DNA from: Auanema rhodensis
Lineage: Eukaryota; Animalia; Nematoda
DNA: 64,000 nucleotides
Reading direction: 5' to 3'
Assembly (NCBI GenBank): GCA_964057225.1
Contig: OZ059894.1
Coordinates: forward strand, 2,728,001 to 2,792,000
Numbering within the stretch: the first letter of the stretch is position 1; each line of letters opens with the position of its first letter. The translations under genes were made by a program, and so were the position numbers. Shown piece after piece: positions 181 through 52,984 of this stretch. The notes below the pieces were generated by a model. That model saw only the letters and a list, made by a program, of their open reading frames with translations, did no database searches and had not been told where the DNA came from.

Positions 181-193
181 AGTTGATATCTCG

Positions 194-263: not shown

Positions 264-331
264 TATATTACATTGAGAAACGCTTAATACAAAAATTAGT
301 TATGATCGTTTGAAAAATGATGCATTAGTGT

Positions 332-359
332 ATGTTGAGTTTCCATGTACACTCAACAT
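332..359. repeat. Perfect 9-bp inverted repeat with a 10-nt loop (every monomer; allele-dependent)
   Basis: atgttgagt-ttccatgtac-actcaacat. Confidence 0.95.
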
Positions 360-18100: not shown

Positions 18101-21100
18101 AGCGCAAATCTGATAACACAGATCGACGCAGCTTAAAAATCTGCATCGAATGCACTATACTACATTGAGAAACGCTTAATACAAAAATTAGTTATGATCG
18201 TTTGAAAAATGATGCATTAGTGTATGTTGAGTTTCCATGTACACTCAACATTGCTTCCAAAAACATTTTGACAAAAATTTTTTCGAAAAATTTCAAAATA
18301 ATTTAGCAAAAAGTAGATGTTTTTAGATTTCTTTTTTCAAGGCAAAGACGATGGACATTGTTATTCAACGAAAAAATTAATTCTTCAGGGTGAAAATCGA
18401 GGATATAAGTGTGAACTTATATCAGTTGATATCTCGGTGCATTTTTAAGCTAGCGCAAATCTGATAACACAGATCGATGCAGCTTAAAAATCCGCATCGA
18501 ATGCACTATACTACATTGAGAAACGCTTAATACAAAAATTAGTTATGATCGTTTGAAAAATGATGCATTAGTGTATGTTGAGTTTCCATGTACACTAAAC
18601 ATTGCTTCCAAAAACATTTTGACAAAAATTTTTTCGAAAAATTTCAAAATAATTTAGCAAAAAGTAGATGTTTTTAGATTTCTTTTTCAAGGCAAAGACG
18701 ATGGACATTGTTATTCAACGAAAAAATTAATTCTTCAGGGTGAAAATCGAGGATATAAGTGTGAACATATATCAGTTGATATCTCGGTGCATTTTTAAGC
18801 TAGCGCAAATCTGATAACACAGATCGACGCAGCTTAAAAATCTGCATCGAATGCACTATACTACATTGAGAAACGCTTAATACAAAAATTAGTTATGATC
18901 GTTTGAAAAATGATGCATTAGTGTATGTTGAGTTTCCATGTACACTCAACATTGCTTCCAAAAACATTTTGACAAAAATTTTTTCGAAAAATTTCAAAAT
19001 AATTTAGCAAAAAGTAGATGTTTTTAGATTTCTTTTTTCAAGGCAAAGACGATGGACATTGTTATTCAACGAAAAAATTAATTCTTCAGGGTGAAAATCG
19101 AGGATATAAGTGTGAACTTATATCAGTTGATATCTCGGTGCATTTTTAAGCTAGCGCAAATCTGATAACACAGATCGACGCAGCTTAAAAATCCTCATCG
19201 AATGCACTATAATACATTGAAAAACGCTTAATACAAAAATTAGTTATGATCGTTTGAAAAATGATGCATTAGTGTATGTTGAGTTTCCATGTACACTCAA
19301 CATTGCTTCCAAAAACATTTTGACAAAAATTTTTTCGAAAAATTTCAAAATAATTTAGCAAAAAGTAGATGTTTTTAGATTTCTTTTTTCAAGGCAAAGA
19401 CGATGGACAATGTTATTCAACGAAAAAATTAATTCTTCAGGGTGAAAATCGAGGATATAAGTGTGAACTCATATCAGTTGATATCTCGGTGCATTTTTAA
19501 GCTAGCGCAAATCTGATAACACAGATCGACGCAGCTTAAAAATCCGCATCGAATGCACTATACTACATTGAAAAACGCTTAATACAAAAATTAGTTATGA
19601 TCGTTTGAAAAATGATGCATTAGTGTATGTTGAGTTTCCATGTACACTCAACATTGCTTCCAAAAACATTTTGACAAAAATTTTTTCGAAAAATTTCAAA
19701 ATAATTTAGCAAAAAGTAGATGTTTTTAGATTTCTTATTTCAAGGCAAAGACGATGGACATTGTTATTCAACGAAAAAATTAATTCTTCAGGGTGAAAAT
19801 CGAGGATATAAGTGTGAACTTATATCAGTTGATATCTCGGTGCATTTTTAAGCTAGCGCAAATCTGATAACACAGATCGATGCAGCTTAAAAATCCGCAT
19901 CGAATGCACTATACTACATTGAGAAACGCTTAATACAAAAATTAGTTATGATCGTTTGAAAAATGATGCATTAGTGTATGTTGAGTTTCCATGTACACTA
20001 AACATTGCTTCCAAAAACATTTTGACAAAAATTTTTTCGAAAAATTTCAAAATAATTTAGCAAAAAGTAGATGTTTTTAGATTTCTTTTTCAAGGCAAAG
20101 ACGATGGACATTGTTATTCAACGAAAAAATTAATTCTTCAGGGTGAAAATCGAGGATATAAGTGTGAACATATATCAGTTGATATCTCGGTGCATTTTTA
20201 AGCTAGCGCAAATCTGATAACACAGATCGACGCAGCTTAAAAATCTGCATCGAATGCACTATACTACATTGAGAAACGCTTAATACAAAAATTAGTTATG
20301 ATCGTTTGAAAAATGATGCATTAGTGTATGTTGAGTTTCCATGTACACTCAACATTGCTTCCAAAAACATTTTGACAAAAATTTTTTCGAAAAATTTCAA
20401 AATAATTTAGCAAAAAGTAGATGTTTTTAGATTTCTTTTTTCAAGGCAAAGACGATGGACATTGTTATTCAACGAAAAAATTAATTCTTCAGGGTGAAAA
20501 TCGAGGATATAAGTGTGAACTTATATCAGTTGATATCTCGGTGCATTTTTAAGCTAGCGCAAATCTGATAACACAGATCGATGCAGCTTAAAAATCCGCA
20601 TCGAATGCACTATACTACATTGAGAAACGCTTAATACAAAAATTAGTTATGATCGTTTGAAAAATGATGCATTAGTGTATGTTGAGTTTCCATGTACAAT
20701 CAACATTGCTTCCAAAAACATTTTGACAAAAATTTTTTCGAAAAATTTCAAAATAATTTAGCAAAAAGTAGATGTTTTTAGATTTCTTTTTTCAAGGCAA
20801 AGACGATGGACATTGTTATTCAACGAAAAAATTAATTCTTCAGGGTGAAAATCGAGGATATAAGTGTGAACTTATATCAGTTGATATCTCGGTGCATTTT
20901 TAAGCTAGCGCAAATCTGATAACACAGATCGATGCAGCTTAAAAATCCGCATCGAATGCACTATACTACATTGAGAAACGCTTAATACAAAAATTAGTTA
21001 TGATCGTTTGAAAAATGATGCATTAGTGTATGTTGAGTTTCCATGTACACTCAACATTGCTTCCAAAAACATTTAGACAAAAATTTTTTCGAAAAATTTC

Positions 21101-23154
21101 AAAATAATTTAGCAAAAAGTAGATGTTTTTAGATTCCTTTTTTCAAGGCAAAGACGATGGACATTGTTATTCAACGAAAAAATTAATTCTTCAGGGTGAA
21201 AATCGAGGATATAAGTGTGAACTTATATCAGTTGATATCTCGGTGCATTTTTAAGCTAGCGCAAATCTGATAACACAGATCGATGCAGCTTAAAAATCCG
21301 CATCGAATGCACTATACTACATTGAGAAACGCTTAATACAAAAATTAGTTATGATCGTTTGAAAAATGATGCATTAGTGTATGTTGAGTTTCCATGTACA
21401 CTAAACATTGCTTCCAAAAACATTTTGACAAAAATTTTTTCGAAAAATTTCAAAATAATTTAGCAAAAAGTAGATGTTTTTAGATTTCTTTTTCAAGGCA
21501 AAGACGATGGACATTGTTATTCAACGAAAAAATTAATTCTTCAGGGTGAAAATCGAGGATATAAGTGTGAACATATATCAGTTGATATCTCGGTGCATTT
21601 TTAAGCTAGCGCAAATCTGATAACACAGATCGACGCAGCTTAAAAATCTGCATCGAATGCACTATACTACATTGAGAAACGCTTAATACAAAAATTAGTT
21701 ATGATCGTTTGAAAAATGATGCATTAGTGTATGTTGAGTTTCCATGTACACTCAACATTGCTTCCAAAAACATTTTGACAAAAATTTTTTCGAAAAATTT
21801 CAAAATAATTTAGCAAAAAGTAGATGTTTTTAGATTTCTTTTTTCAAGGCAAAGACGATGGACATTGTTATTCAACGAAAAAATTAATTCTTCAGGGTGA
21901 AAATCGAGGATATAAGTGTGAACTTATATCAGTTGATATCTCGGTGCATTTTTAAGCTAGCGCAAATCTGATAACACAGATCGATGCAGCTTAAAAATCC
22001 GCATCGAATGCACTATACTACATTGAGAAACGCTTAATACAAAAATTAGTTATGATCGTTTGAAAAATGATGCATTAGTGTATGTTGAGTTTCCATGTAC
22101 AATCAACATTGCTTCCAAAAACATTTTGACAAAAATTTTTTCGAAAAATTTCAAAATAATTTAGCAAAAAGTAGATGTTTTTAGATTTCTTTTTTCAAGG
22201 CAAAGACGATGGACATTGTTATTCAACGAAAAAATTAATTCTTCAGGGTGAAAATCGAGGATATAAGTGTGAACTTATATCAGTTGATATCTCGGTGCAT
22301 TTTTAAGCTAGCGCAAATCTGATAACACAGATCGATGCAGCTTAAAAATCCGCATCGAATGCACTATACTACATTGAGAAACGCTTAATACAAAAATTAG
22401 TTATGATCGTTTGAAAAATGATGCATTAGTGTATGTTGAGTTTCCATGTACACTCAACATTGCTTCCAAAAACATTTAGACAAAAATTTTTTCGAAAAAT
22501 TTCAAAATAATTTAGCAAAAAGTAGATGTTTTTAGATTCCTTTTTTCAAGGCAAAGACGATGGACATTGTTATTCAACGAAAAAATTAATTCTTCAGGGT
22601 GAAAATCGAGGATATAAGTGTGAACTTATATCAGTTGATATCTCGGTGCATTTTTAAGCTAGCGCAAATCTGATAACACAGATCGATGCAGCTTAAAAAT
22701 CCGCATCGAATGCACTATACTACATTGAGAAACGCTTAATACAAAAATTAGTTATGATCGTTTGAAAAATGATGCATTAGTGTATGTTGAGTTTCCATGT
22801 ACAATCAACATTGCTTCCAAAAACATTTAGACAAAAATTTTTTCGAAAAATTTCAAAATAATTTAGCAAAAAGTAGATGTTTTTAGATTCCTTTTTTCAA
22901 GGCAAAGACGATGGACATTGTTATTCAACGAAAAAATTAATTCTTCAGGGTGAAAATCGAGGATATAAGTGTGAACTTATATCAGTTGATATCTCGGTGC
23001 ATTTTTAAGCTAGCGCAAATCTGATAACACAGATCGATGCAGCTTAAAAATCCGCATCGAATGCACTATACTACATTGAGAAACGCTTAATACAAAAATT
23101 AGTTATGATCGTTTGAAAAATGATGCATTAGTGTATGTTGAGTTTCCATGTACA

Positions 23155-26100
23155 ATCAACATTGCTTCCAAAAACATTTAGACAAAAATTTTTTCGAAAA
23201 ATTTCAAAATAATTTAGCAAAAAGTAGATGTTTTTAGATTCCTTTTTTTAAGGCAAAGACGATGGACATTGTTATTCAACGAAAAAATTAATTCTTTAGG
23301 GTGAAAATCGAGGATATAAGTGTGAACTTATATCAGTTGATATCTCGGTGCATTTTTAAGCTAGCGCAAATCTGATAAAACAGATCGACGCAGCTTAAAA
23401 ATCCGCATCGAATGCACTATACTACATTGAGAAACGCTTAAAACAAAAATTAGTTATGATCGTTTGAAAAATGATGCATTAGTGTATGTTGAGTTTCCAT
23501 GTACACTCAACATTGCTTCCAAAAACATTTTGACAAAAATTTTTTCGAAAAATTTCAAAATAATTTAGCAAAAAGTAGATGTTTTTAGATTTCTTTTTTC
23601 AAGGCAAAGACGATGGACATTGTTATTCAACGAAAAAATTAATTCTTCAGGGTGAAAATCGAGGATATAAGTGTGAACTTATATCAGTTGATATCTCGGT
23701 GCATCTTTAAACTAGCGCAAATCTGATAACACAGATCGATGCAGCTTAAAAACCCGCATCGAATGCACTATACTACATTGAGAAACGCTTAATACAAAAA
23801 TTAGTTATGATCGTTTGAAAAATGATGCATTAGTGTATGTTGAGTTTCCATGTACACTCAACATTGCTTCCAAAAACATTTTGACAAAAATTTTTTCGAA
23901 AAATTTCGAAATAATTTAGCAAAAAGTAGATGTTTTTAGATTCCTTTTTTCAAGGCGAAGACGATGGACATTGTTATTCAACGAAAAAATTAATTCTTCA
24001 GGGTGAAAATCGAGGATATAAGTGTGAACTTATATCAGTTGATATATCGGTGCATTTTTAAGCTAGCGCAAATCTGATAAAACAGATCGACGCAGCTTAA
24101 AAATCCGCATCGAATGCACTATACTACATTGAGAAACGCTTAATACAAAAATTAGTTATGATCGTTTGAAAAATGATGCATTAGTGTATGTTGAGTTTCC
24201 ATGTACACTCAACATTGCTTCCAAAAACATTTTGACAAAAATTTTTTCGAAAAATTTCAAAATAATTTAGCAAAAAGTAGATGTTTTTAGATACCTTTTT
24301 TTAAGGCAAAGACGATGGACTTTGTTATTCAACGAAAAAATTAATTCTTCAGGGTGAAAATCGAGGATATAAGTGTGAACTTATATCAGTTGATATCTCG
24401 GTGCATTTTTAAGCTAGCGCAAATCTGATAACACAGATCGATGCAGCTTAAAAATCCGCATCTAATGCACTATACTACATTGAGAAACGCTTAATACAAA
24501 AATTAGTTATGATCGTTTGAAAAATGATGCATTAGTGTATGTTGAGTTTCCATGTACACTCAACATTTCTTCCAAAAACATTTAGACAAAAATTTTTTCG
24601 AAAAATTTCAAAATAATTTAGCAAAAAGTAGATGTTTTTAGATTCCTTTTTTCAAGGCAAAGACGATGGACATTGTTATTCAACGAAATAATTAATTCTT
24701 CAGGGTGAAAATCGAGGATATAAGTGTGAACTTATATCAGTTGATATCTCGGTGCATTTTTAAGCTAGCGCAAATCTGATAACACAGATCGATGCAGCTT
24801 AAAAATCCGCATCGAATGCACTATACTACATTGAGAAACGCTTAATACAAAAATTAGTTATGATCGTTTGAAAAATGATGCATTAGTGTATGTTGAGTTT
24901 CCATGTACAATCAACATTGCTTCCAAAAACATTTAGACAAAAATTTTTTCGAAAAATTTCAAAATAATTTAGCAAAAAGTAGATGTTTTTAGATTCCTTT
25001 TTTCAAGGCAAAGACGATGGACATTGTTATTCAACGAATAAATTAATTCTTCAGGGTGAAAATCGAGGATATAAGTGTGAACTTATATCAGTTGATATCT
25101 CGGTGCATTTTTAAGCTAGCGCAAATCTGATAACACAGATCGATGCAGCTTAAAAATCCGCATCGAATGCACTATACTACATTGAGAAACGCTTAATACA
25201 AAAATTAGTTATGATCGTTTGAAAAATGATGCATTAGTGTATGTTGAGTTTCCATGTACAATCAACATTGCTTCCAAAAACATTTAGACAAAAATTTTTT
25301 CGAAAAATTTCAAAATAATTTAGCAAAAAGTAGATGTTTTTAGATTCCTTTTTTTAAGGCAAAGACGATGGACATTGTTATTCAACGAAAAAATTAATTC
25401 TTTAGGGTGAAAATCGAGGATATAAGTGTGAACTTATATCAGTTGATATCTCGGTGCATTTTTAAGCTAGCGCAAATCTGATAAAACAGATCGACGCAGC
25501 TTAAAAATCCGCATCGAATGCACTATACTACATTGAGAAACGCTTAAAACAAAAATTAGTTATGATCGTTTGAAAAATGATGCATTAGTGTATGTTGAGT
25601 TTCCATGTACACTCAACATTGCTTCCAAAAACATTTTGACAAAAATTTTTTCGAAAAATTTCAAAATAATTTAGCAAAAAGTAGATGTTTTTAGATTTCT
25701 TTTTTCAAGGCAAAGACGATGGACATTGTTATTCAACGAAAAAATTAATTCTTCAGGGTGAAAATCGAGGATATAAGTGTGAACTTATATCAGTTGATAT
25801 CTCGGTGCATCTTTAAACTAGCGCAAATCTGATAACACAGATCGATGCAGCTTAAAAACCCGCATCGAATGCACTATACTACATTGAGAAACGCTTAATA
25901 CAAAAATTAGTTATGATCGTTTGAAAAATGATGCATTAGTGTATGTTGAGTTTCCATGTACACTCAACATTGCTTCCAAAAACATTTTGACAAAAATTTT
26001 TTCGAAAAATTTCGAAATAATTTAGCAAAAAGTAGATGTTTTTAGATTCCTTTTTTCAAGGCGAAGACGATGGACATTGTTATTCAACGAAAAAATTAAT

Positions 26101-28419
26101 TCTTCAGGGTGAAAATCGAGGATATAAGTGTGAACTTATATCAGTTGATATATCGGTGCATTTTTAAGCTAGCGCAAATCTGATAAAACAGATCGACGCA
26201 GCTTAAAAATCCGCATCGAATGCACTATACTACATTGAGAAACGCTTAATACAAAAATTAGTTATGATCGTTTGAAAAATGATGCATTAGTGTATGTTGA
26301 GTTTCCATGTACACTCAACATTGCTTCCAAAAACATTTTGACAAAAATTTTTTCGAAAAATTTCAAAATAATTTAGCAAAAAGTAGATGTTTTTAGATAC
26401 CTTTTTTTAAGGCAAAGACGATGGACTTTGTTATTCAACGAAAAAATTAATTCTTCAGGGTGAAAATCGAGGATATAAGTGTGAACTTATATCAGTTGAT
26501 ATCTCGGTGCATTTTTAAGCTAGCGCAAATCTGATAACACAGATCGATGCAGCTTAAAAATCCGCATCTAATGCACTATACTACATTGAGAAACGCTTAA
26601 TACAAAAATTAGTTATGATCGTTTGAAAAATGATGCATTAGTGTATGTTGAGTTTCCATGTACACTCAACATTTCTTCCAAAAACATTTAGACAAAAATT
26701 TTTTCGAAAAATTTCAAAATAATTTAGCAAAAAGTAGATGTTTTTAGATTCCTTTTTTCAAGGCAAAGACGATGGACATTGTTATTCAACGAAATAATTA
26801 ATTCTTCAGGGTGAAAATCGAGGATATAAGTGTGAACTTATATCAGTTGATATCTCGGTGCATTTTTAAGCTAGCGCAAATCTGATAACACAGATCGATG
26901 CAGCTTAAAAATCCGCATCGAATGCACTATACTACATTGAGAAACGCTTAATACAAAAATTAGTTATGATCGTTTGAAAAATGATGCATTAGTGTATGTT
27001 GAGTTTCCATGTACAATCAACATTGCTTCCAAAAACATTTAGACAAAAATTTTTTCGAAAAATTTCAAAATAATTTAGCAAAAAGTAGATGTTTTTAGAT
27101 TCCTTTTTTCAAGGCAAAGACGATGGACATTGTTATTCAACGAAAAAATTAATTCTTTAGGGTGAAAATCGAGGATATAAGTGTGAACTTATATCAGTTG
27201 ATATCTCGGTGCATTTTTAAGCTAGCGCAAATCTGATAAAACAGATCGACGCAGCTTAAAAATCCGCATCGAATGCACTATACTACATTGAGAAACGCTT
27301 AATACAAAAATTAGTTATGATCGTTTGAAAAATGATGCATTAGTGTATGTTGAGTTTCCATGTACACTCAACATTGCTTCCAAAAACATTTTGACAAAAA
27401 TTTTTTCGAAAAATTTCAAAATAATTTAGCAAAAAGTAGATGTTTTTAGATTTCTTTTTTCAAGGCAAAGACGATGGACATTGTTATTCAACGAAAAAAT
27501 TAATTCTTCAGGGTGAAAATCGAGGATATAAGTGTGAACTTATATCAGTTGATATCTCGGTGCATCTTTAAACTAGCGCAAATCTGATAACACAGATCGA
27601 TGCAGCTTAAAAACCCGCATCGAATGCACTATACTACATTGAGAAACGCTTAATACAAAAATTAGTTATGATCGTTTGAAAAATGATGCATTAGTGTATG
27701 TTGAGTTTCCATGTACACTCAACATTGCTTCCAAAAACATTTTGACAAAAATTTTTTCGAAAAATTTCGAAATAATTTAGCAAAAAGTAGATGTTTTTAG
27801 ATTCCTTTTTTCAAGGCGAAGACGATGGACATTGTTATTCAACGAAAAAATTAATTCTTCAGGGTGAAAATCGAGGATATAAGTGTGAACTTATATCAGT
27901 TGATATATCGGTGCATTTTTAAGCTAGCGCAAATCTGATAAAACAGATCGACGCAGCTTAAAAATCCGCATCGAATGCACTATACTACATTGAGAAACGC
28001 TTAATACAAAAATTAGTTATGATCGTTTGAAAAATGATGCATTAGTGTATGTTGAGTTTCCATGTACACTCAACATTGCTTCCAAAAACATTTTGACAAA
28101 AATTTTTTCGAAAAATTTCAAAATAATTTAGCAAAAAGTAGATGTTTTTAGATACCTTTTTTTAAGGCAAAGACGATGGACTTTGTTATTCAACGAAAAA
28201 ATTAATTCTTCAGGGTGAAAATCGAGGATATAAGTGTGAACTTATATCAGTTGATATCTCGGTGCATTTTTAAGCTAGCGCAAATCTGATAACACAGATC
28301 GATGCAGCTTAAAAATCCGCATCGAATGCACTATACTACATTGAAAAACGCTTAATACAAAAATTAGTTATGATCGTTTGAAAAATGATGCATTAGTGTA
28401 TGTTGAGTTTCCATGTACA
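23155..28419. repeat. Higher-order repeat of 6 then 5 monomers (2106 / 1755 bp)
   Basis: The monomer marked gcatctttaaact + aacccgc starts at 23506, 25612 and 27367. The monomer marked gatacc + ggacttt starts at 24208, 26314 and 28069. Confidence 0.9.
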
Positions 28420-29823
28420 ATCAACATTGCTTCCAAAAACATTTTGACAAAAATTTTTTCGAAAAATTTCGAAATAATTTAGCAAAAAGTAGATGTTTTT
28501 AGATTCCTTTTTTCAAGGCGAAGACGATGGACATTGTTATTCAACGAAAAAATTAATTCTTCAGGGTGAAAATCGAGGATATAAGTGTGAACTTATATCA
28601 GTTGATATCTCGGTGCATTTTTAAGCTAGCGCAAATCTGATAACACAGATCGATGCAGCTTAAAAATCCGCATCGAATGCACTATACTACATTGAAAAAC
28701 GCTTAATACAAAAATTAGTTATGATCGTTTGAAAAATGATGCATTAGTGTATGTTGAGTTTCCATGTACAATCAACATTGCTTCCAAAAACATTTTGACA
28801 AAAATTTTTTCGAAAAATTTCGAAATAATTTAGCAAAAAGTAGATGTTTTTAGATTCCTTTTTTCAAGGCGAAGACGATGGACATTGTTATTCAACGAAA
28901 AAATTAATTCTTCAGGGTGAAAATAGAGGATATAAGTGTGAACATATATCAGTTGATATCTCGGTGCATTTTTAAGCTAGCGCAAATCTGATAACACAGA
29001 TCGACGCAGCTTAAAAATCTGCATCGAATGCACTATACTACATGGAGAAACGCTTAATACAAAAATTAGTTATGATCGTTTGAAAAATGATGCATTAGTG
29101 TATGTTGAGTTTCCATGTACACTCAACATTGCTTCCAAAAACATTTTGACAAAAATTTTTTCGAAAAATTTCAAAATAATTTAGCAAAAAGTAGATGTTT
29201 TTAGATTCCTTTTTTCAAGGCAAAGACGATGGACAATGTTATTCAACGAAAAAATTAATTCTTCAGGGTGAAAATAGAGGATATAAGTGTGAACATATAT
29301 CAGTTGATATCTCGGTGCATTTTTAAGCTAGCGCAAATCTGATAACACAGATCGACGCAGCTTAAAAATCTGCATCGAATGCACTATACTACATGGAGAA
29401 ACGCTTAATACAAAAATTAGTTATGATCGTTTGAAAAATGATGCATTAGTGTATGTTGAGTTTCCATGTACACTCAACATTGCTTCCAAAAACATTTTGA
29501 CAAAAATTTTTTCGAAAAATTTCAAAATAATTTAGCAAAAAGTAGATGTTTTTAGATTCCTTTTTTCAAGGCAAAGACGATGGACAATGTTATTCAACGA
29601 AAAAATTAATTCTTCAGGGTGAAAATCGAGGATATAAGTGTGAACTTATATCAGTTGATATCTCGGTGCATTTTTAAGCTAGCGCAAATCTGATAACACA
29701 GATCGACGCAGCTTAAAAATCTGCATCGAATGCACTATACTACATTGAGAAACGCTTAATACAAAAATTAGTTATGATCGTTTGAAAAATGATGCATTAG
29801 TGTATGTTGAGTTTCCATGTACA

Positions 29824-32800
29824 CTCAACATTGCTTCCAAAAACATTTTGACAAAAATTTTTTCGAAAAATTTCAAAATAATTTAGCAAAAAGTAGATGT
29901 TTTTAGATTTCTTTTTTCAAGGCAAAGACGATGGACATTGTTATTCAACGAAAAAATTAATTCTTCAGGGTGAAAATCGAGGATATAAGTGTGAACTTAT
30001 ATCAGTTGATATCTCGGTGCATTTTTAAGCTAGCGCAAATCTGATAACACAGATCGATGCAGCTTAAAAATCCGCATCGAATGGACTATACTACATTGAG
30101 AAACGCTTAATACAAAAATTAGTTATGATCGTTTGAAAAATGATGCATTAGTGTATGTTGAGTTTCCATGTACACTCAACATTGCTTCCAAAAACATTTA
30201 GACAAAAATTTTTTCGAAAAATTTCGAAATAATTTAGCAAAAAGTAGATGTTTTTAGATTCCTTTTTTCAAGGCGAAGACGATGGACATTGTTATTCAAC
30301 GAAAAAATTAATTCTTCAGGGTGAAAATAGAGGATATATGTGTGAACATATATCAGTTGATATCTCGGTGCATTTTTAAGGTAGCGCAAATCTGATAACA
30401 CAGATCGACGCAGCTTAAAAATCTGCATCGAATGCACTATACTACATGGAGAAACGCTTAATACAAAAATTAGTTATGATCGTTTGAAAAATGATGCATT
30501 AGTGTATGTTGAGTTTCCATGTACACTCAACATTGCTTCCAAAAACATTTTGACAAAAATTTTTTCGAAAAATTTCGAAATAATTTAGCAAAAAGTAGAT
30601 GTTTTTAGATTCCTTTTTTCAAGGCGAAGACGATGGACATTGTTATTCAACGAAAAAATTAATTCTTCAGGGTGAAAATCGAGGATATAAGTGTGAACTT
30701 ATATCAGTTGATATATCGGTGCATTTTTAAGCTAGCGCAAATCTGATAAAACAGATCGACGCAGCTTAAAAATCCGCATCGAATGCACTATACTACATTG
30801 AGAAACGCTTAAAACAAAAATTAGTTATGATCGTTTGAAAAATGATGCATTAGTGTATGTTGAGTTTCCATGTACACTCAACATTGCTTCCAAAAACATT
30901 TTGACAAAAATTTTTTCGAAAAATTTCGAAATAATTTAGCAAAAAGTAGATGTTTTTAGATTCCTTTTTTCAAGGCGAAGACGATGGACATTGTTATTCA
31001 ACGAAAAAATTAATTCTTCAGGGTGAAAATCGAGGATATAAGTGTGAACTTATATCAGTTGATATATCGGTGCATTTTTAAGCTAGCGCAAATCTGATAA
31101 AACAGATCGACGCAGCTTAAAAATCCGCATCGAATGCACTATACTACATTGAGAAACGCTTAATACAAAAATTAGTTATGATCGTTTGAAAAATGATGCA
31201 TTAGTGTATGTTGAGTTTCCATGTACACTCAACATTGCTTCCAAAAACATTTTGACAAAAATTTTTTCGAAAAATTTCAAAATAATTTAGCAAAAAGTAG
31301 ATGTTTTTAGATACCTTTTTTTAAGGCAAAGACGATGGACTTTGTTATTCAACGAAAAAATTAATTCTTCAGGGTGAAAATCGAGGATATAAGTGTGAAC
31401 TTATATCAGTTGATATCTCGGTGCATTTTTAAGCTAGCGCAAATCTGATAACACAGATCGATGCAGCTTAAAAATCCGCATCGAATGCACTATACTACAT
31501 TGAAAAACGCTTAATACAAAAATTAGTTATGATCGTTTGAAAAATGATGCATTAGTGTATGTTGAGTTTCCATGTACAATCAACATTGCTTCCAAAAACA
31601 TTTTGACAAAAATTTTTTCGAAAAATTTCGAAATAATTTAGCAAAAAGTAGATGTTTTTAGATTCCTTTTTTCAAGGCGAAGACGATGGACATTGTTATT
31701 CAACGAAAAAATTAATTCTTCAGGGTGAAAATCGAGGATATAAGTGTGAACTTATATCAGTTGATATCTCGGTGCATTTTTAAGCTAGCGCAAATCTGAT
31801 AACACAGATCGATGCAGCTTAAAAATCCGCATCGAATGCACTATACTACATTGAGAAACGCTTAATACAAAAATTAGTTATGATCGTTTGAAAAATGATG
31901 CATTAGTGTATGTTGAGTTTCCATGTACACTCAACATTGCTTCCAAAAACATTTTGACAAAAATTTTTTCGAAAAATTTCAAAATAATTTAGCAAAAAGT
32001 AGATGTTTTTAGATTTCTTTTTTCAAGGCAAAGACGATGGACATTGTTATTCAACGAAAAAATTAATTCTTCAGGGTGAAAATCGAGGATATAAGTGTGA
32101 ACTTATATCAGTTGATATCTCGGTGCATTTTTAAGCTAGCGCAAATCTGATAACACAGATCGATGCAGCTTAAAAATCCGCATCGAATGGACTATACTAC
32201 ATTGAGAAACGCTTAATACAAAAATTAGTTATGATCGTTTGAAAAATGATGCATTAGTGTATGTTGAGTTTCCATGTACACTCAACATTGCTTCCAAAAA
32301 CATTTTGACAAAAATTTTTTCGAAAAATTTCGAAATAATTTAGCAAAAAGTAGATGTTTTTAGATTCCTTTTTTCAAGGCGAAGACGATGGACATTGTTA
32401 TTCAACGAAAAAATTAATTCTTCAGGGTGAAAATAGAGGATATAAGTGTGAACATATATCAGTTGATATCTCGGTGCATTTTTAAGCTAGCGCAAATCTG
32501 ATAACACAGATCGACGCAGCTTAAAAATCTGCATCGAATGCACTATACTACATGGAGAAACGCTTAATACAAAAATTAGTTATGATCGTTTGAAAAATGA
32601 TGCATTAGTGTATGTTGAGTTTCCATGTACACTCAACATTGCTTCCAAAAACATTTTGACAAAAATTTTTTCGAAAAATTTCGAAATAATTTAGCAAAAA
32701 GTAGATGTTTTTAGATTCCTTTTTTCAAGGCGAAGACGATGGACATTGTTATTCAACGAAAAAATTAATTCTTCAGGGTGAAAATCGAGGATATAAGTGT

Positions 32801-33333
32801 GAACTTATATCAGTTGATATATCGGTGCATTTTTAAGCTAGCGCAAATCTGATAAAACAGATCGACGCAGCTTAAAAATCCGCATCGAATGCACTATACT
32901 ACATTGAGAAACGCTTAAAACAAAAATTAGTTATGATCGTTTGAAAAATGATGCATTAGTGTATGTTGAGTTTCCATGTACACTCAACATTGCTTCCAAA
33001 AACATTTTGACAAAAATTTTTTCGAAAAATTTCGAAATAATTTAGCAAAAAGTAGATGTTTTTAGATTCCTTTTTTCAAGGCGAAGACGATGGACATTGT
33101 TATTCAACGAAAAAATTAATTCTTCAGGGTGAAAATCGAGGATATAAGTGTGAACTTATATCAGTTGATATATCGGTGCATTTTTAAGCTAGCGCAAATC
33201 TGATAAAACAGATCGACGCAGCTTAAAAATCCGCATCGAATGCACTATACTACATTGAGAAACGCTTAATACAAAAATTAGTTATGATCGTTTGAAAAAT
33301 GATGCATTAGTGTATGTTGAGTTTCCATGTACA
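29824..33333. repeat. Four-monomer block duplicated at a 6-monomer (2106-bp) spacing
   Basis: The atggact allele is in monomers 29824 and 31930. gatatatcgg + cttaaaac is in monomers 30526 and 32632. Confidence 0.8.
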
Positions 33334-36300
33334 CTCAACATTGCTTCCAAAAACATTTTGACAAAAATTTTTTCGAAAAATTTCAAAATAATTTAGCAAA
33401 AAGTAGATGTTTTTAGATTCCTTTTTTCAAGGCGAAGACGATGGACATTGTTATTCAACGAAAAAATTAATTCTTCAGGGTGAAAATCGAGGATATAAGT
33501 GTGAACTTATATCAGTTGATATCTCGGTGCATTTTTAAGCTAGCGCAAATCTGATAACACAGATCGATGCAGCTTAAAAATCTGCATCGAATGCACTATA
33601 CTACATTGAGAAACGCTTAATACAAAAATTAGTTATGATCGTTTGAAAAATGATGCATTAGTGTATGTTGAGTTTCCATGTACACTCAACATTGCTTCCA
33701 AAAACATTTTGACAAAAATTTTTTCGAAAAATTTCAAAATAATTTAGCAAAAAGTAGATGTTTTTAGATTTCTTTTTTCAAGGCAAAGACGATGGACATT
33801 GTTATTCAACGAAAAAATTAATTCTTCAGGGTGAAAATCGAGGATATAAGTGTGAACTTATATCAGTTGATATCTCGGTGCATTTTTAAGCTAGCGCAAA
33901 TCTGATAACACAGATCGATGCAGCTTAAAAATCCGCATCGAATGGACTATACTACATTGAGAAACGCTTAATACAAAAATTAGTTATGATCGTTTGAAAA
34001 ATGATGCATTAGTGTATGTTGAGTTTCCATGTACACTCAACATTGCTTCCAAAAACATTTAGACAAAAATTTTTTCGAAAAATTTCGAAATAATTTAGCA
34101 AAAAGTAGATGTTTTTAGATTCCTTTTTTCAAGGCGAAGACGATGGACATTGTTATTCAACGAAAAAATTAATTCTTCAGGGTGAAAATCGAGGATATAA
34201 GTGTGAACTTATATCAGTTGATATCTCGGTGCATTTTTAAGCTAGCGCAAATCTGATAACACAGATCGATGCAGCTTAAAAATCCGCATCGAATGGACTA
34301 TACTACATTGAGAAACGCTTAATACAAAAATTAGTTATGATCGTTTGAAAAATGATGCATTAGTGTATGTTGAGTTTCCATGTACACTCAACATTGCTTC
34401 CAAAAACATTTAGACAAAAATTTTTTCGAAAAATTTCGAAATAATTTAGCAAAAAGTAGATGTTTTTAGATTCCTTTTTTCAAGGCGAAGACGATGGACA
34501 TTGTTATTCAACGAAAAAATTAATTCTTCAGGGTGAAAATAGAGGATATATGTGTGAACATATATCAGTTGATATCTCGGTGCATTTTTAAGCTAGCGCA
34601 AATCTGATAACACAGATCGACGCAGCTTAAAAATCTGCATCGAATGCACTATACTACATGGAGAAACGCTTAATACAAAAATTAGTTATGATCGTTTGAA
34701 AAATGATGCATTAGTGTATGTTGAGTTTCCATGTACACTCAACATTGCTTCCAAAAACATTTTGACAAAAATTTTTTCGAAAAATTTCGAAATAATTTAG
34801 CAAAAAGTAGATGTTTTTAGATTCCTTTTTTCAAGGCGAAGACGATGGACATTGTTATTCAACGAAAAAATTAATTCTTCAGGGTGAAAATCGAGGATAT
34901 AAGTGTGAACTTATATCAGTTGATATCTCGGTGCATTTTTAAGCTAGCGCAAATCTGATAAAACAGATCGACGCAGCTTAAAAATCCGCAAAGAATGCAC
35001 TATACTACATTGAGAAACGCTTAATACAAAAATTAGTTATGATCGTTTGAAAAATGATGCATTAGTGTATGTTGAGTTTCCATGTACACTAAACATTGCT
35101 TCCAAAAACATTTTGACAAAAATTTTTTCGAAAAATTTCAAAATAATTTAGCAAAAAGTAGATGTTTTTAGATTTCTTTTTCAAGGCAAAGACGATGGAC
35201 AATGTTATTCAACGAAAAAATTAATTCTTCAGGGTGAAAATCGAGGATATATGTGTGAACATATATCAGTTGATATCTCGGTGCATTTTTAAGCTAGCGC
35301 AAATCTGATAACACAGATCGATGCAGCTTAAAAATCTGCATCGAATGCACTATACTACATTGAGAAACGCTTAATACAAAAATTAGTTATGATCGTTTGA
35401 AAAATGATGCATTAGTGTATGTTGAGTTTCCATGTACACTCAACATTGCTTCCAAAAACATTTTGACAAAAATTTTTTCGAAAAATTTCAAAATAATTTA
35501 GCAAAAAGTAGATGTTTTTAGATTTCTTTTTTCAAGGCAAAGACGATGGACATTGTTATTCAACGAAAAAATTAATTCTTCAGGGTGAAAATCGAGGATA
35601 TAAGTGTGAACTTATATCAGTTGATATCTCGGTGCATTTTTAAGCTAGCGCAAATCTGATAACACAGATCGATGCAGCTTAAAAATCCGCATCGAATGCA
35701 CTATACTACATTGAGAAACGCTTAATACAAAAATTAGTTATGATCGTTTGAAAAATGATGCATTAGTGTATGTTGAGTTTCCATGTACAATCAACATTGC
35801 TTCCAAAAACATTTTGACAAAAATTTTTTCGAAAAATTTCAAAATAATTTAGCAAAAAATAGATGTTTTTAGATTTCTTTTTTCAAGGCAAAGACGATGG
35901 ACATTGTTATTCAACGAAAAAATTAATTCTTCAGGGTGAAAATCGAGGATATAAGTGTGAACTTATATCAGTTGATATCTCGGTGCATTTTCAAGCTAGC
36001 GCAAATCTGATAACACAGATCGATGCAGCTTAAAAATCCGCATCGAATGCACTATACTACATTGAGAAACGCTTAATACAAAAATTAGTTATGATCGTTT
36101 GAAAAATGATGCATTAGTGTATGTTGAGTTTCCATGTACAATCAACATTGCTTCCAAAAACATTTTGACAAAAATTTTTTCGAAAAATTTCAAAATAATT
36201 TAGCAAAAAGTAGATGTTTTTAGATTTCTTTTTTCAAGGCAAAGACGATGGACATTGTTATTCAACGAAAAAATTAATTCTTCAGGGTGAAAATCGAGGA

Positions 36301-36842
36301 TATAAGTGTGAACTTATATCAGTTGATATCTCGGTGCATTTTTAAGCTAGCGCAAATCTGATAACACAGATCGATGCAGCTTAAAAATCCGCATCGAATG
36401 CACTATACTACATTGAGAAACGCTTAATACAAAAATTAGTTATGATCGTTTGAAAAATGATGCATTAGTGTATGTTGAGTTTCCATGTACACTCAACATT
36501 GCTTCCAAAAACATTTAGACAAAAATTTTTTCGAAAAATTTCAAAATAATTTAGCAAAAAGTAGATGTTTTTAGATTCCTTTTTTCAAGGCAAAGACGAT
36601 GGACATTGTTATTCAACGAAAAAATTAATTCTTCAGGGTGAAAATCGAGGATATAAGTGTGAACTTATATCAGTTGATATCTCGGTGCATTTTTAAGCTA
36701 GCGCAAATCTGATAACACAGATCGATGCAGCTCAAAAATCCGCATCGAATGCACTATACTACATTGAGAAACGCTTAATACAAAAATTAGTTATGATCGT
36801 TTGAAAAATGATGCATTAGTGTATGTTGAGTTTCCATGTACA

Positions 36843-39800
36843 CTCAACATTGCTTCCAAAAACATTTAGACAAAAATTTTTTCGAAAAATTTCAAAATAA
36901 TTTAGCAAAAAGTAGATGTTTTTAGATTCCTTTTTTCAAGGCAAAGACGATGGACATTGTTATTCAACGAAAAAATTAATTCTTCAGGGTGAAAATCGAG
37001 GATATAAGTGTGAACTTATATCAGTTGATATCTCGGTGCATTTTTAAGCTAGCGCAAATCTGATAACACAGATCGATGCAGCTTAAAAATCCGCATCGAA
37101 TGCACTATACTACATTGAGAAACGCTTAATACAAAAATTAGTTATGATCGTTTGAAAAATGATGCATTAGTGTATATTGAGTTTCCATGTACAATCAACA
37201 TTGCTTCCAAAAACATTTTGACAAAAATTTTTTCGAAAAATTTCAAAATAATTTAGCAAAAAGTAGATGTTTTTAGATTTCTTTTTTCAAGGCAAAGACG
37301 ATGGACATTGTTATTCAACGAAAAAATTAATTCTTCAGGGTGAAAATCGAGGATATAAGTGTGAACTTATATCAGTTGATATCTCGGTGCATTTTTAAGC
37401 TAGCGCAAATCTGATAACACAGATCGATGCAGCTTAAAAATCCGCATCGAATGCACTATACTACATTGAGAAACGCTTAATACAAAAATTAGTTATGATC
37501 GTTTGAAAAATGATGCATTAGTGTATGTTGAGTTTCCATGTACACTCAACATTGCTTCCAAAAACATTTAGACAAAAATTTTTTCGAAAAATTTCAAAAT
37601 AATTTAGCAAAAAGTAGATGTTTTTAGATTCCTTTTTTCAAGGCAAAGACGATGGACATTGTTATTCAACGAAAAAATTAATTCTTTAGGGTGAAAATCG
37701 AGGATATAAGTGTGAACTTATATCAGTTGATATCTCGGTGCATTTTTAAGCTAGCGCAAATCTGATAAAACAGATCGACGCAGCTTAAAAATCCGCATCG
37801 AATGCACTATACTACATTGAGAAACGCTTAATACAAAAATTAGTTATGATCGTTTGAAAAATGATGCATTAGTGTATGTTGAGTTTCCATGTACACTCAA
37901 CATTGCTTCCAAAAACATTTTGACAAAAATTTTTTCGAAAAATTTCGAAATAATTTAGCAAAAAGTAGATGTTTTTAGATTTCTTTTTTCAAGGCAAAGA
38001 CGATGGACATTGTTATTCAACGAAAAAATTAATTCTTCAGGGTGAAAATCGAGGATATAAGTGTGAACTTATATCAGTTGATATCTCGGTGCATTTTTAA
38101 GCTAGCGCAAATCTGATAACACAGATCGATGCAGCTTAAAAATCCGCATCGAATGCACTATACTACATTGAGAAACGCTTAATACAAAAATTAGTTATGA
38201 TCGTTTGAAAAATGATGCATTAGTGTATGTTGAGTTTCCATGTACACTCAACATTGCTTCCAAAAACATTTAGACAAAAATTTTTTCGAAAAATTTCAAA
38301 ATAATTTAGCAAAAAGTAGATGTTTTTAGATTCCTTTTTTCAAGGCAAAGACGATGGACATTGTTATTCAACGAAAAAATTAATTCTTCAGGGTGAAAAT
38401 CGAGGATATAAGTGTGAACTTATATCAGTTGATATCTCGGTGCATTTTTAAGCTAGCGCAAATCTGATAACACAGATCGATGCAGCTTAAAAATCCGCAT
38501 CGAATGCACTATACTACATTGAGAAACGCTTAATACAAAAATTAGTTATGATCGTTTGAAAAATGATGCATTAGTGTATATTGAGTTTCCATGTACAATC
38601 AACATTGCTTCCAAAAACATTTTGACAAAAATTTTTTCGAAAAATTTCAAAATAATTTAGCAAAAAGTAGATGTTTTTAGATTTCTTTTTTCAAGGCAAA
38701 GACGATGGACATTGTTATTCAACGAAAAATCTAATTCTTCAGGGTGAAAATCGAGGATATAAGTGTGAACTTATATCAGTTGATATCTCGGTGCATTTTT
38801 AAGCTAGCGCAAATCTGATAACACAGATCGATGCAGCTTAAAAATCCGCATCGAATGCACTATACTACATTGAGAAACGCTTAATACAAAAATTAGTTAT
38901 GATTGTTTGAAAAATGATGCATTAGTGTATGTTGAGTTTCCATGTACACTCAACATTGCTTCCAAAAACATTTAGACAAAAATTTTTTCGAAAAATTTCA
39001 AAATAATTTAGCAGAAAGTAGATGTTTTTAGATTCCTTTTTTCAAGGCAAAGACGATGGACATTGTTATTCAACGAAAAAATTAATTCTTTAGGGTGAAA
39101 ATCGAGGATATAAGTGTGAACTTATATCAGTTGATATCTCGGTGCATTTTTAAGCTAGCGCAAATCTGATAACACAGATCGATGCAGCTTAAAAATCCGC
39201 ATCGAATGCACTATACTACATTGAGAAACGCTTAATACAAAAATTAGTTATGATCGTTTGAAAAATGATGCATTAGTGTATGTTGAGTTTCCATGTACAA
39301 TCAACATTGCTTCCAAAAACATTTTGACAAAAATTTTTTCGAAAAATTTCAAAATAATTTAGCAAAAAGTAGATGTTTTTAGATTTCTTTTTTCAAGGCA
39401 AAGACGATGGACATTGTTATTCAACGAAAAAATTAATTCTTCAGGGTGAAAATCGAGGATATAAGTGTGAACTTATATCAGTTGATATCTCGGTGCATTT
39501 TTAAGCTAGCGCAAATCTGATAACACAGATCGATGCAGCTTAAAAATCCGCATCGAATGCACTATACTACATTGAGAAACGCTTAATACAAAAATTAGTT
39601 ATGATCGTTTGAAAAATGATGCATTAGTGTATGTTGAGTTTCCATGTACACTCAACATTGCTTCCAAAAACATTTAGACAAAAATTTTTTCGAAAAATTT
39701 CAAAATAATTTAGCAAAAAGTAGATGTTTTTAGATTCCTTTTTTCAAGGCAAAGACGATGGACATTGTTATTCAACGAAAAAATTAATTCTTCAGGGTGA

Positions 39801-42107
39801 AAATCGAGGATATAAGTGTGAACTTATATCAGTTGATATCTCGGTGCATTTTTAAGCTAGCGCAAATCTGATAACACAGATCGATGCAGCTTAAAAATCC
39901 GCATCGAATGCACTATACTACATTGAGAAACGCTTAATACAAAAATTAGTTATGATCGTTTGAAAAATGATGCATTAGTGTATATTGAGTTTCCATGTAC
40001 AATCAACATTGCTTCCAAAAACATTTTGACAAAAATTTTTTCGAAAAATTTCAAAATAATTTAGCAAAAAGTAGATGTTTTTAGATTTCTTTTTTCAAGG
40101 CAAAGACGATGGACATTGTTATTCAACGAAAAAATTAATTCTTCAGGGTGAAAATCGAGGATATAAGTGTGAACTTATATCAGTTGATATCTCGGTGCAT
40201 TTTTAAGCTAGCGCAAATCTGATAACACAGATCGATGCAGCTTAAAAATCCGCATCGAATGCACTATACTACATTGAGAAACGCTTAATACAAAAATTAG
40301 TTATGATCGTTTGAAAAATGATGCATTAGTGTATGTTGAGTTTCCATGTACACTCAACATTGCTTCCAAAAACATTTAGACAAAAATTTTTTCGAAAAAT
40401 TTCAAAATAATTTAGCAAAAAGTAGATGTTTTTAGATTCCTTTTTTCAAGGCAAAGACGATGGACATTGTTATTCAACGAAAAAATTAATTCTTTAGGGT
40501 GAAAATCGAGGATATAAGTGTGAACTTATATCAGTTGATATCTCGGTGCATTTTTAAGCTAGCGCAAATCTGATAAAACAGATCGACGCAGCTTAAAAAT
40601 CCGCATCGAATGCACTATACTACATTGAGAAACGCTTAATACAAAAATTAGTTATGATCGTTTGAAAAATGATGCATTAGTGTATGTTGAGTTTCCATGT
40701 ACACTCAACATTGCTTCCAAAAACATTTTGACAAAAATTTTTTCGAAAAATTTCGAAATAATTTAGCAAAAAGTAGATGTTTTTAGATTTCTTTTTTCAA
40801 GGCAAAGACGATGGACATTGTTATTCAACGAAAAAATTAATTCTTCAGGGTGAAAATCGAGGATATAAGTGTGAACTTATATCAGTTGATATCTCGGTGC
40901 ATTTTTAAGCTAGCGCAAATCTGATAACACAGATCGATGCAGCTTAAAAATCCGCATCGAATGCACTATACTACATTGAGAAACGCTTAATACAAAAATT
41001 AGTTATGATCGTTTGAAAAATGATGCATTAGTGTATGTTGAGTTTCCATGTACACTCAACATTGCTTCCAAAAACATTTAGACAAAAATTTTTTCGAAAA
41101 ATTTCAAAATAATTTAGCAAAAAGTAGATGTTTTTAGATTCCTTTTTTCAAGGCAAAGACGATGGACATTGTTATTCAACGAAAAAATTAATTCTTCAGG
41201 GTGAAAATCGAGGATATAAGTGTGAACTTATATCAGTTGATATCTCGGTGCATTTTTAAGCTAGCGCAAATCTGATAACACAGATCGATGCAGCTTAAAA
41301 ATCCGCATCGAATGCACTATACTACATTGAGAAACGCTTAATACAAAAATTAGTTATGATCGTTTGAAAAATGATGCATTAGTGTATATTGAGTTTCCAT
41401 GTACAATCAACATTGCTTCCAAAAACATTTTGACAAAAATTTTTTCGAAAAATTTCAAAATAATTTAGCAAAAAGTAGATGTTTTTAGATTTCTTTTTTC
41501 AAGGCAAAGACGATGGACATTGTTATTCAACGAAAAATCTAATTCTTCAGGGTGAAAATCGAGGATATAAGTGTGAACTTATATCAGTTGATATCTCGGT
41601 GCATTTTTAAGCTAGCGCAAATCTGATAACACAGATCGATGCAGCTTAAAAATCCGCATCGAATGCACTATACTACATTGAGAAACGCTTAATACAAAAA
41701 TTAGTTATGATCGTTTGAAAAATGATGCATTAGTGTATGTTGAGTTTCCATGTACACTCAACATTGCTTCCAAAAACATTTAGACAAAAATTTTTTCGAA
41801 AAATTTCAAAATAATTTAGCAGAAAGTAGATGTTTTTAGATTCCTTTTTTCAAGGCAAAGACGATGGACATTGTTATTCAACGAAAAAATTAATTCTTTA
41901 GGGTGAAAATCGAGGATATAAGTGTGAACTTATATCAGTTGATATCTCGGTGCATTTTTAAGCTAGCGCAAATCTGATAACACAGATCGATGCAGCTTAA
42001 AAATCCGCATCGAATGCACTATACTACATTGAGAAACGCTTAATACAAAAATTAGTTATGATCGTTTGAAAAATGATGCATTAGTGTATGTTGAGTTTCC
42101 ATGTACA
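36843..42107. repeat. 8-mer higher-order repeat (2808 bp) built from two diverged 4-mers (1404 bp)
   Basis: The gtatAttgag allele occurs at 37176, 38580, 39984 and 41388 (1404 spacing). aaaaaTCtaa occurs at 38730 and 41538, and gcaGaaag at 39014 and 41822 (2808 spacing). Confidence 0.9.
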
Positions 42108-45100
42108 CTCAACATTGCTTCCAAAAACATTTTGACAAAAATTTTTTCGAAAAATTTCGAAATAATTTAGCAAAAAGTAGATGTTTTTAGATTCCTTTTT
42201 TCAAGGCGAAGACGATGGACATTGTTATTCAACGAAAAAATTAATTCTTCAGGGTGAAAATCGAGGATATAAGTGTGAACTTATATCAGTTGATATCTCG
42301 GTGCATTTTTAAGCTAGCGCAAATCTGATAAAACAGATCGACGCAGCTTAAAAATCCGCATCGAATGCACTATACTACATTGAGAAACGCTTAATACAAA
42401 AATTAGTTATGATCGTTTGAAAAATGATGCATTAGTGTATGTTGAGTTTCCATGTACACTAAACATTGCTTCCAAAAACATTTTGACAAAAATTTTTTCG
42501 AAAAATTTCAAAATAATTTAGCAAAAAGTAGATGTTTTTAGATTTCTTTTTCAAGGCAAAGACGATGGACATTGTTATTCAACGAAAAAATTAATTCTTC
42601 AGGGTGAAAATCGAGGATATAAGTGTGAACATATATCAGTTGATATCTCGGTGCATTTTTAAGCTAGCGCAAATCTGATAACACAGATCGACGCAGCTTA
42701 AAAATCTGCATCGAATGCACTATACTACATTGAGAAACGCTTAATACAAAAATTAGTTATGATCGTTTGAAAAATGATGCATTAGTGTATGTTGAGTTTC
42801 CATGTACACTAAACATTGCTTCCAAAAACATTTTGACAAAAATTTTTTCGAAAAATTTCAAAATAATTTAGCAAAAAGTAGATGTTTTTAGATTTCTTTT
42901 TCAAGGCAAAGACGATGGACATTGTTATTCAACGAAAAAATTAATTCTTCAGGGTGAAAATCGAGGATATAAGTGTGAACATATATCAGTTGATATCTCG
43001 GTGCATTTTTAAGCTAGCGCAAATCTGATAACACAGATCGACGCAGCTTAAAAATCTGCATCGAATGCACTATACTACATTGAGAAACGCTTAATACAAA
43101 AATTAGTTATGATCGTTTGAAAAATGATGCATTAGTGTATGTTGAGTTTCCATGTACACTCAACATTGCTTCCAAAAACATTTTGACAATAATTTTTTCG
43201 AAAAATTTCAAAATAATTTAGCAAAAAGTAGATGTTTTTAGATTTCTTTTTTCAAGGCAAAGACGATGGACATTGTTATTCAACGAAAAAATTAATTCTT
43301 CAGGGTGAAAATCGAGGATATAAGTGTGAACTTATATCAGTTGATATCTCGGTGCATTTTTAAGCTAGCGCAAATCTGATAACACAGATCGATGCAGCTT
43401 AAAAATCCGCATCGAATGCACTATACTACATTGAGAAACGCTTAATACAAAAATTAGTTATGATCGTTTGAAAAATGATGCATTAGTGTATGTTGAGTTT
43501 CCATGTACACTCAACATTGCTTCCAAAAACATTTAGACAAAAATTTTTTCGAAAAATTTCAAAATAATTTAGCAAAAAGTAGATGTTTTTAGATTCCTTT
43601 TTTCAAGGCAAAGACGATGGACATTGTTATTCAACGAAAAAATTAATTCTTTAGGGTGAAAATCGAGGATATAAGTGTGAACTTATATCAGTTGATATCT
43701 CGGTGCATTTTTAAGCTAGCGCAAATCTGATAAAACAGATCGACGCAGCTTAAAAATCCGCATCGAATGCACTATACTACATTGAGAAACGCTTAATACA
43801 AAAATTAGTTATGATCGTTTGAAAAATGATGCATTAGTGTATGTTGAGTTTCCATGTACACTCAACATTGCTTCCAAAAACATTTTGACAAAAATTTTTT
43901 CGAAAAATTTCGAAATAATTTAGCAAAAAGTAGATGTTTTTAGATTCCTTTTTTCAAGGCGAAGACGATGGACATTGTTATTCAACGAAAAAATTAATTC
44001 TTCAGGGTGAAAATCGAGGATATAAGTGTGAACTTATATCAGTTGATATCTCGGTGCATTTTTAAGCTAGCGCAAATCTGATAAAACAGATCGACGCAGC
44101 TTAAAAATCCGCATCGAATGCACTATACTACATTGAGAAACGCTTAATACAAAAATTAGTTATGATCGTTTGAAAAATGATGCATTAGTGTATGTTGAGT
44201 TTCCATGTACACTAAACATTGCTTCCAAAAACATTTTGACAAAAATTTTTTCGAAAAATTTCAAAATAATTTAGCAAAAAGTAGATGTTTTTAGATTTCT
44301 TTTTCAAGGCAAAGACGATGGACATTGTTATTCAACGAAAAAATTAATTCTTCAGGGTGAAAATCGAGGATATAAGTGTGAACATATATCAGTTGATATC
44401 TCGGTGCATTTTTAAGCTAGCGCAAATCTGATAACACAGATCGATGCAGCTTAAAAATCCGCATCGAATGCACTATACTACATTGAGAAACGCTTAATAC
44501 AAAAATTAGTTATGATCGTTTGAAAAATGATGCATTAGTGTATGTTGAGTTTCCATGTACAATCAACATTGCTTCCAAAAACATTTAGACAAAATTTTTT
44601 CGAAAAATTTCAAAATAATTTAGCAAAAAGTAGATGTTTTTAGATTCCTTTTTTCAAGGCAAAGACGATGGACATTGTTATTCAACGAAAAAATTAATTC
44701 TTTAGGGTGAAAATCGAGGATATAAGTGTGAACTTATATCAGTTGATATCTCGGTGCATTTTTAAGCTAGCGCAAATCTGATAACACAGATCGATGCAGC
44801 TTAAAAATCCGCATCGAATGCACTATACTACATTGAGAAACGCTTAATACAAAAATTAGTTATGATCGTTTGAAAAATGATGCATTAGTGTATGTTGAGT
44901 TTCCATGTACACTCAACATTGCTTCCAAAAACATTTAGACAAAAATTTTTTCGAAAAATTTCAAAATAATTTAGCAAAAAGTAGATGTTTTTAGATTTCT
45001 TTTTTCAAGGCAAAGACGATGGACATTGTTATTCAACGAAAAAATTAATTCTTCAGGGTGAAAATCGAGGATATAAGTGTGAACATATATCAGTTGATAT

Positions 45101-52282: not shown

Positions 52283-52984
52283 CTCAACATTGCTTCCAAA
52301 AACATTTTGACAAAAATTTTTTCGAAAAATTTCAAAATAATTTAGCAAAAAGTAGATGTTTTTAGATTCCTTTTTTCAAGGCAAAGACGATGGACATTGT
52401 TATTCAACGAAAAAATTAATTCTTCAGGGTGAAAATCGAGGATATAAGTGTGAACTTATATCAGTTGATATCTCGGTGCATTTTTAAGCTAGCGCAAATC
52501 TGATAACACAGATCGATGCAGCTTAAAAATCCGCATCGAATGCACTATACTACATTGAGAAACGCTTAATACAAAAATTAGTTATGATCGTTTGAAAAAT
52601 GATGCATTAGTGTATGTTGAGTTTCCATGTACAATCAACATTGCTTCCAAAAACATTTTGACAAAAATTTTTTCGAAAAATTTCAAAATAATTTAGCAAA
52701 AAGTAGATGTTTTTAGATTTCTTTTTTCAAGGCAAAGACGATGGACATTGTTATTCAACGAAAAAATTAATTCTTCAGGGTGAAAATCGAGGATATAAGT
52801 GTGAACTTATATCAGTTGATATCTCGGTGCATTTTTAAGCTAGCGCAAATCTGATAACACAGATCGATGCAGCTTAAAAATCCGCATCGAATGCACTATA
52901 CTACATTGAGAAACGCTTAATACAAAAATTAGTTATGATCGTTTGAAAAATGATGCATTAGTGTATGTTGAGTTTCCATGTACA

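Follow-up and report, generated by a model that had tools for sequence, protein, structure and literature searches.

A nested base-pair swap in a satellite hairpin of Auanema rhodensis, possibly a hairpin-templated correction that spread locally

The window analyzed here, a 64-kb stretch (64,000 nucleotides) of contig OZ059894.1 of the nematode Auanema rhodensis, consists from end to end of a single tandem array. TRF resolves it into 182.4 copies of a 351-bp period with 98% matches, and the G+C content of the array is 31%. A tolerant motif search of the window found the hairpin that is the subject of this report once per monomer (n = 182), with a motif-to-motif spacing of 351 bp in 164 cases and 350 bp in 17. 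The array was split into 181 aligned monomers, and the 41 sites varying in at least two copies were tabulated as a haplotype table, to whose alignment columns the positions of substitutions below refer. The table also reveals higher-order repeat blocks of approximately 6, 8, and 5 monomers at 22796-28411, 36835-42099, and 55785-63857, respectively, and the 350-bp monomers usually form the first half of a dimer with an H2-type monomer.

Open reading frames run across the hairpin on both strands. On the plus strand, a 43-codon ATG-initiated frame is present in nearly every monomer (for example, at 29897-30028), and the double-mutant copies described below alter two of its codons. Exact look-ups of the commonest 43-residue product, and of a 67-residue product encoded across the hairpin on the reverse strand, found neither on record. 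Because no such product is on record, the 43-codon frame, lying as it does in an AT-rich repeat, is probably meaningless. Exact-pattern scans of genome, metagenome, and viral contig collections with the hairpin and with an invariant 24-mer of the monomer returned 0 matches, and a literature search for the hairpin sequence string was likewise without a match.

Perfect dyads are abundant in this repeat. The consensus monomer contains eight perfect inverted-repeat stems of at least 6 bp with loops of 3 to 30 nt (11, 9, 9, 8, 7, 7, 6, and 6 bp), which cover 121 of its 351 positions. Dinucleotide shuffles predict 0.115 perfect inverted repeats of 9 bp or longer, and the monomer has three (P ~ 0.0005); four reach at least 8 bp, against 0.43 expected in composition-matched shuffles; the single-stranded DNA fold of the whole monomer has a z score of -4.7. 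In its enrichment in dyads of about 10 bp and in its predicted folding, the monomer resembles the satellites with dyads and non-B DNA treated by Kasinathan and Henikoff (2018; PMC5889037). A palindromic break motif known from nematodes that eliminate DNA was also considered, from its description in a preprint, and was set aside: that motif has 29 bases and a single central base, whereas the hairpin has 22 bases and a four-base center. The preprint also reports that Auanema rhodense has tandem repeats of 167-504 nt restricted to the germ line, to which this window could not be tied.

Every monomer carries, at this hairpin, a 9-bp inverted repeat with a GTGA spacer (Table 1). Most copies (152 of 182) have the perfect consensus form, GATATAAGT-GTGA-ACTTATATC, with an A..T pair at columns 165 and 174. 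T174A alone changes the 3' arm to ACATATATC in 25 of the 182 and places an A:A mismatch in the 9-bp stem, while 3 of the 182 carry T174A together with A165T, giving GATATATGT-GTGA-ACATATATC with a T..A pair; the other two hairpins have private changes. A165T without T174A, which would leave T opposite T, was found in 0 of the 182 hairpins of the 64-kb window. Counted by monomer, all three A165T copies lie among the 28 T174A monomers and none among the 153 others, and they amount to one or two events. A sequence-only reading of the same DNA had already described the swap at the three sites listed in Table 1, some two dozen T174A monomers, and the confinement of A165T to that background; the motif search returned the same three sites and the same nesting, with 25 mismatched copies. 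The haplotype table agrees, too, with its placing of the third copy on the 'tcgagg' haplotype associated with 350-bp monomers and of the first two on 'atagagg'. The base-pair swap as observed is thereby confirmed, and its description is correct in every detail checkable within the window.

Table 1. Features of the satellite window discussed in the text
Feature	Position	Strand	Remarks
351-bp AT-rich satellite array	1..64000	+	182 monomers, 17 of them 350 bp; local higher-order blocks
Single-mutant hairpin, A:A mismatch	29280..29301	+	Example, one of 25
Double-mutant hairpin, T:A pair restored	30333..30354	+	m86, haplotype H1 ('atagagg')
Consensus perfect hairpin	30684..30705	+	Example, one of 152
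Monomer m97	34028..34378	+	Hybrid: left part H1-type, right part m96/m85-type (haplotype table)
Double-mutant hairpin	34545..34566	+	m98, haplotype as m86 except for one private base in m86
Double-mutant hairpin	35246..35267	+	m100, H2-like mosaic 'tcgagg'; identical to m98 only in columns 165-243

As DNA, the hairpin is predicted to fold with -6.6 kcal/mol in the consensus form, -2.8 kcal/mol with the mismatch, and -6.2 kcal/mol in the double mutant; the corresponding RNA values are -13.1, -5.5, and -9.9 kcal/mol, and the minus strand gives the same folding pattern as the plus strand. The double mutant regains approximately 3.4 kcal/mol over the mismatched form as DNA and 4.4 kcal/mol as RNA, and these fold energies therefore indicate that A165T restores the inner stem. 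The outer 5-bp helix that flanks the hairpin has a different history in the H1 copies, where it is broken by C164A (a C-to-A change at alignment column 164) without restoration, so that these copies bear two stem-weakening changes. The C-to-A change at column 164, which turns 'atcgagg' into 'atagagg', is found only on T174A monomers (15 of 15; for example, 6463-6505). The GUGA that the loop would present as RNA matches the GNRA tetraloop pattern, as the sequence-only reading had pointed out, in the sense of a pattern match.

The haplotypes of the three double mutants show how few origins they can represent. Monomers m86 and m98 have the same H1 haplotype and are one private base apart. In haplotype terms, the run m96-m97-m98 reads X, hybrid (H1 left plus X right), D, and the hybrid m97 is what should result if an m85-m86-like pair underwent unequal crossover at an offset of one monomer; it ties m98 to m86 by descent. 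Because the two monomers share a haplotype and are linked via this unequal-crossover product, they have a single origin. Monomer m100 differs from m98 at 11 sites, and its identity with m98 is confined to the tract given in Table 1. At columns 164 and 174, separated by 10 bp, all four allele combinations occur, and A165T in m100 therefore calls either for a second mutation or for a conversion tract that does not exceed 79 bp and has one end within a stretch of 9 bp. All three double mutants lie within 14 monomers of one another (P = 0.02 for triples drawn randomly from the T174A monomers), and m100 alone, among 26 other T174A monomers, lies within two monomers of an existing double mutant (1/26). 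This clustering and the proximity of m100 to m98 favor local transfer over a second origin. A scenario of three independent A165T origins was rejected, being ruled out by the shared haplotype and the clustering. Monomer m100 also carries 124A, for which a donor is absent nearby and which may therefore come from unseen copies.

Such mosaics are common in this array. Among site pairs no more than 10 bp apart, 5 of 43 show all four allele combinations, although two of these five use alignment columns 1 and 352, where a one-base alignment shift may produce the pattern. In m37-m40 (12974-14377), two right-half variants (columns 215 and 236) are common to three different left-half haplotypes, which is direct evidence for short-tract homogenization among neighboring monomers. 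Hybrid monomers, block duplications, and short shared tracts are the ordinary products of concerted evolution by unequal crossover and gene conversion, from which the array does not differ, and together they explain the arrival of the allele at three places.

The chance level of a nested pair was assessed with a set of 72 substitution variants, which were re-placed randomly on positions of the same base with their carrier sets kept. At least one same-copy nested complementary pair arose in 12%, 6%, 5%, and 3% of trials for minimum stems of 5, 6, 7, and 9 bp, respectively. Complementary changes on both sides are seen at three stem pairs of the monomer; they occur in the same copies only at 165/174, and at the other two they occur in different monomers. 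A single event would fall on the T174A background by chance with P = 28/181 = 0.155, and the nesting probability would be 0.024 if m100 represented a second origin. The paired change therefore exceeds chance only marginally, at about the 0.05 level, which we regard as no more than suggestive.

Covariation, which the sequence-only reading had proposed as a check, is not significant among the eight distinct hairpin haplotypes within the window: with a pair-count tool, 79 of 500 shuffles reach the observed score. Seven of the nine hairpin pairs are uninformative because they never vary, and a single pair shows variation in both of its bases. Variants number 3 in the hairpin stem, where 3.7 would be expected, and 0 in its loop, and the mismatch allele is eight times commoner than the restored allele. 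Taken over all stems of at least 6 bp, there are 35 variants where 23.6 would be expected; this enrichment (P = 0.004) is due to singletons, 19 of 34 of which lie in stem positions. This excess reflects either mutation-prone stems or poorer base calling at hairpins.

The best explanation, which we favor tentatively, is one hairpin-templated (quasi-palindrome) correction followed by local spread. A T174A monomer, with an A:A mismatch in its 9-bp stem, would have gained A165T once, most likely in the course of replication or repair, with the imperfect palindrome folding in single-stranded form and one arm being copied from the other; the route may have been a template switch or mismatch repair within the hairpin. 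Block duplication or unequal crossover would then have carried the allele between m86 and m98. For m100 we infer a short conversion tract (no more than 79 bp, starting on the left somewhere in the 9 bp that separate columns 164 and 174) as the vehicle of A165T. Such a history implies no function for the hairpin. Template switching predicts exactly A165T on the T174A background, where the change lengthens the complementary run from 4 to 9, the largest inverted-repeat gain among the 72 variants. The case shows two features of quasi-palindrome mutation, a pre-existing imperfect repeat and a new base complementary to the opposite arm. There is also a weak general excess of variants that create inverted-repeat runs of at least 7 (13 against 8.1 expected; P = 0.04). 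The dyad enrichment, the nested pair, the descent shared by m86 and m98, the clustering, and the frequency of mosaics would together suggest a templated origin and subsequent spread. Against this explanation, the statistics come down to essentially one event with P values of about 0.05 to 0.15, only 2 bp of stem separate the mismatch from the loop and make a weak primer for an intramolecular switch, the tract into m100 would have to end within a stretch of 9 bp, and the 124A of m100 lacks a nearby donor. The same base change would also be expected if both arms contained an (AT)n-context hot spot, and the excess of perfecting variants is weak. A separate change in the array may be of a similar kind: m110 and m118 (38590-38940 and 41398-41748) carry an adjacent AT-to-TC double substitution in an A-rich stretch. 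This substitution creates an inverted match of 8 bp to TTAGATTT, which lies some 50 bp upstream, and may be a small template-switch event later copied with an 8-monomer block.

The correction of imperfect palindromes by template switching is established in bacteria, in yeast, and in the evolution of RNA genes (PMC7202029, PMC8794818). The swap described here resembles quasi-palindrome template-switch mutation (Ripley 1982; Dutra and Lovett 2006; PMC7202029) in that an imperfect repeat is made perfect by a base exactly complementary to the opposite arm, and A165T within the window is found only on the imperfect T174A background. Unlike those studies, to which the rates and the genetics belong, the present case offers just one or two events, of natural origin, in a non-coding satellite of a eukaryote; the inner stem has 2 bp, and a symmetric context hot spot may account for the change instead. 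For RNA stems, too, template switching has been put forward as an origin of seemingly compensatory substitutions (PMC8794818). As in that work by Monttinen and Loytynoja (2022), an apparently compensatory pair can be explained here by mutation without selection; their subject was conserved RNA genes across a phylogeny, whereas the "lineages" of the satellite are paralogous monomers that exchange sequence and are known from DNA alone.

A rather unlikely alternative, and one that the sequence-only reading missed, dispenses with the hairpin altogether: the two arms would have mutated separately, by chance or at a symmetric hot spot, with the second change falling by luck on a T174A copy. The two arms being reverse complements of each other, T174A and A165T amount to one and the same mutation, GATATAAGT to GATATATGT, read from different strands, and a context hot spot could therefore mimic compensation without any hairpin. 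In the hot-spot version, sequence context would drive the lengthening of an alternating AT run, for example by transient slippage, early in one arm and later in the other. An alternating AT run of at least 6 would arise from just 5 of the 1053 substitutions possible in the monomer, and 3 of these 5 are observed, two of them being the hairpin sites (Fisher P = 0.003); yet this comparison is post hoc, and only the third site is independent (P ~ 0.19). That third substitution, a C-to-A change in GATATC just downstream of the hairpin, is seen at 24005-24047 and in eight other monomers, and all three observed substitutions fall within about 35 bp. Mirror-site coincidences do occur, as the two other doubly changed stem pairs attest, and both the nonsignificant covariation and the P value for a single event on the T174A background sit comfortably with chance. 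On the other side, A165T occurs in 0 of 153 consensus-type monomers, although 85% of the targets are there, and the nesting probability of 0.024 would also tell against chance if m100 were a second origin. Two origins of A165T, on H1 and H2 backgrounds, would make the site a recurrent quasi-palindrome hot spot; this possibility, which overlaps with the single correction and is not additive with it, appears distinctly unlikely. The four allele combinations at columns 164 and 174, the 11 differences between m100 and m98, and the brevity of the tract that these two share (at most 79 bp) would all be accommodated by it, but the position of m100 as the sole other T174A monomer within two of a double mutant points to local transfer, and short tracts common to different backgrounds are found elsewhere in the array.

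Selection on structure, whether on a DNA cruciform, a protein site, or a GUGA-loop RNA hairpin, with compensated copies being favored, seems to us very improbable. It is consistent with the enrichment of perfect dyads in the monomer, with the restoration of a Watson-Crick pair and the energy thus regained, and with a loop that is without variants. Yet the mismatch allele is found in 25 monomers belonging to three or more haplotype families and has itself undergone amplification as part of local higher-order blocks, whereas the restored allele is present in three local copies. Stem-breaking variants are not depleted, either in the hairpin or over all stems; the invariance of seven of the nine pairs is uninformative; and the outer helix of the H1 copies stays broken by C164A. 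A match in Rfam is likewise absent: in a search with E values up to 10, the best match reached 17.5 bits, the gathering score being 39, and no match fell on the hairpin. The inference of the sequence-only reading that the hairpin forms in vivo is accordingly not established, given a significance of about 0.05 across all stems, nonsignificant covariation, stem variants in excess, and a mismatch allele so much commoner than its correction. That the GTGA-loop hairpin is real in vivo, by DNA extrusion or in a transcript, and that its pairing has been repeatedly restored in different arrays via different swaps, the present one being one of several independent cases, strikes us as improbable. An artifact of assembly or consensus calling in a near-identical array deserves very little credence. 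Arrays of 98% identity are hard to assemble, and the 64 kb contain 34 singleton variants, 19 of them in stem positions; the swap, however, is the same transversion seen three times, in a non-homopolymer context and on coherent haplotypes.

With these alternatives weighed, a single templated correction with local spread is still the reading that we prefer. The mechanisms offered by the sequence-only reading fare unevenly: a quasi-palindrome switch together with short-tract conversion or a double origin fits the data, while the limb that invoked selection is without support. Its caveat that everything might go back to a single mutational event has become the main point, since m86 and m98 have one origin and the copies are clustered.

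In sum, the swap is real and neat, but its statistics are thin; it exemplifies a type of event already known and is not evidence of function. It also carries a warning, in that the same context-dependent mutation occurring in both arms of a palindrome resembles compensation. The 64-kb window contributes one event. If the hairpin is real and its pairing is repeatedly restored, the satellite would keep a natural record either of hairpin-templated correction or of selection acting on a satellite structure. Should a genome-wide count confirm the pattern, a megabase-scale satellite with thousands of near-identical hairpins would constitute a convenient natural system, one in which the frequency of "correction" of imperfect palindromes in the germ line of an animal could be measured and compensation driven by mutation could be told apart from compensation driven by selection.
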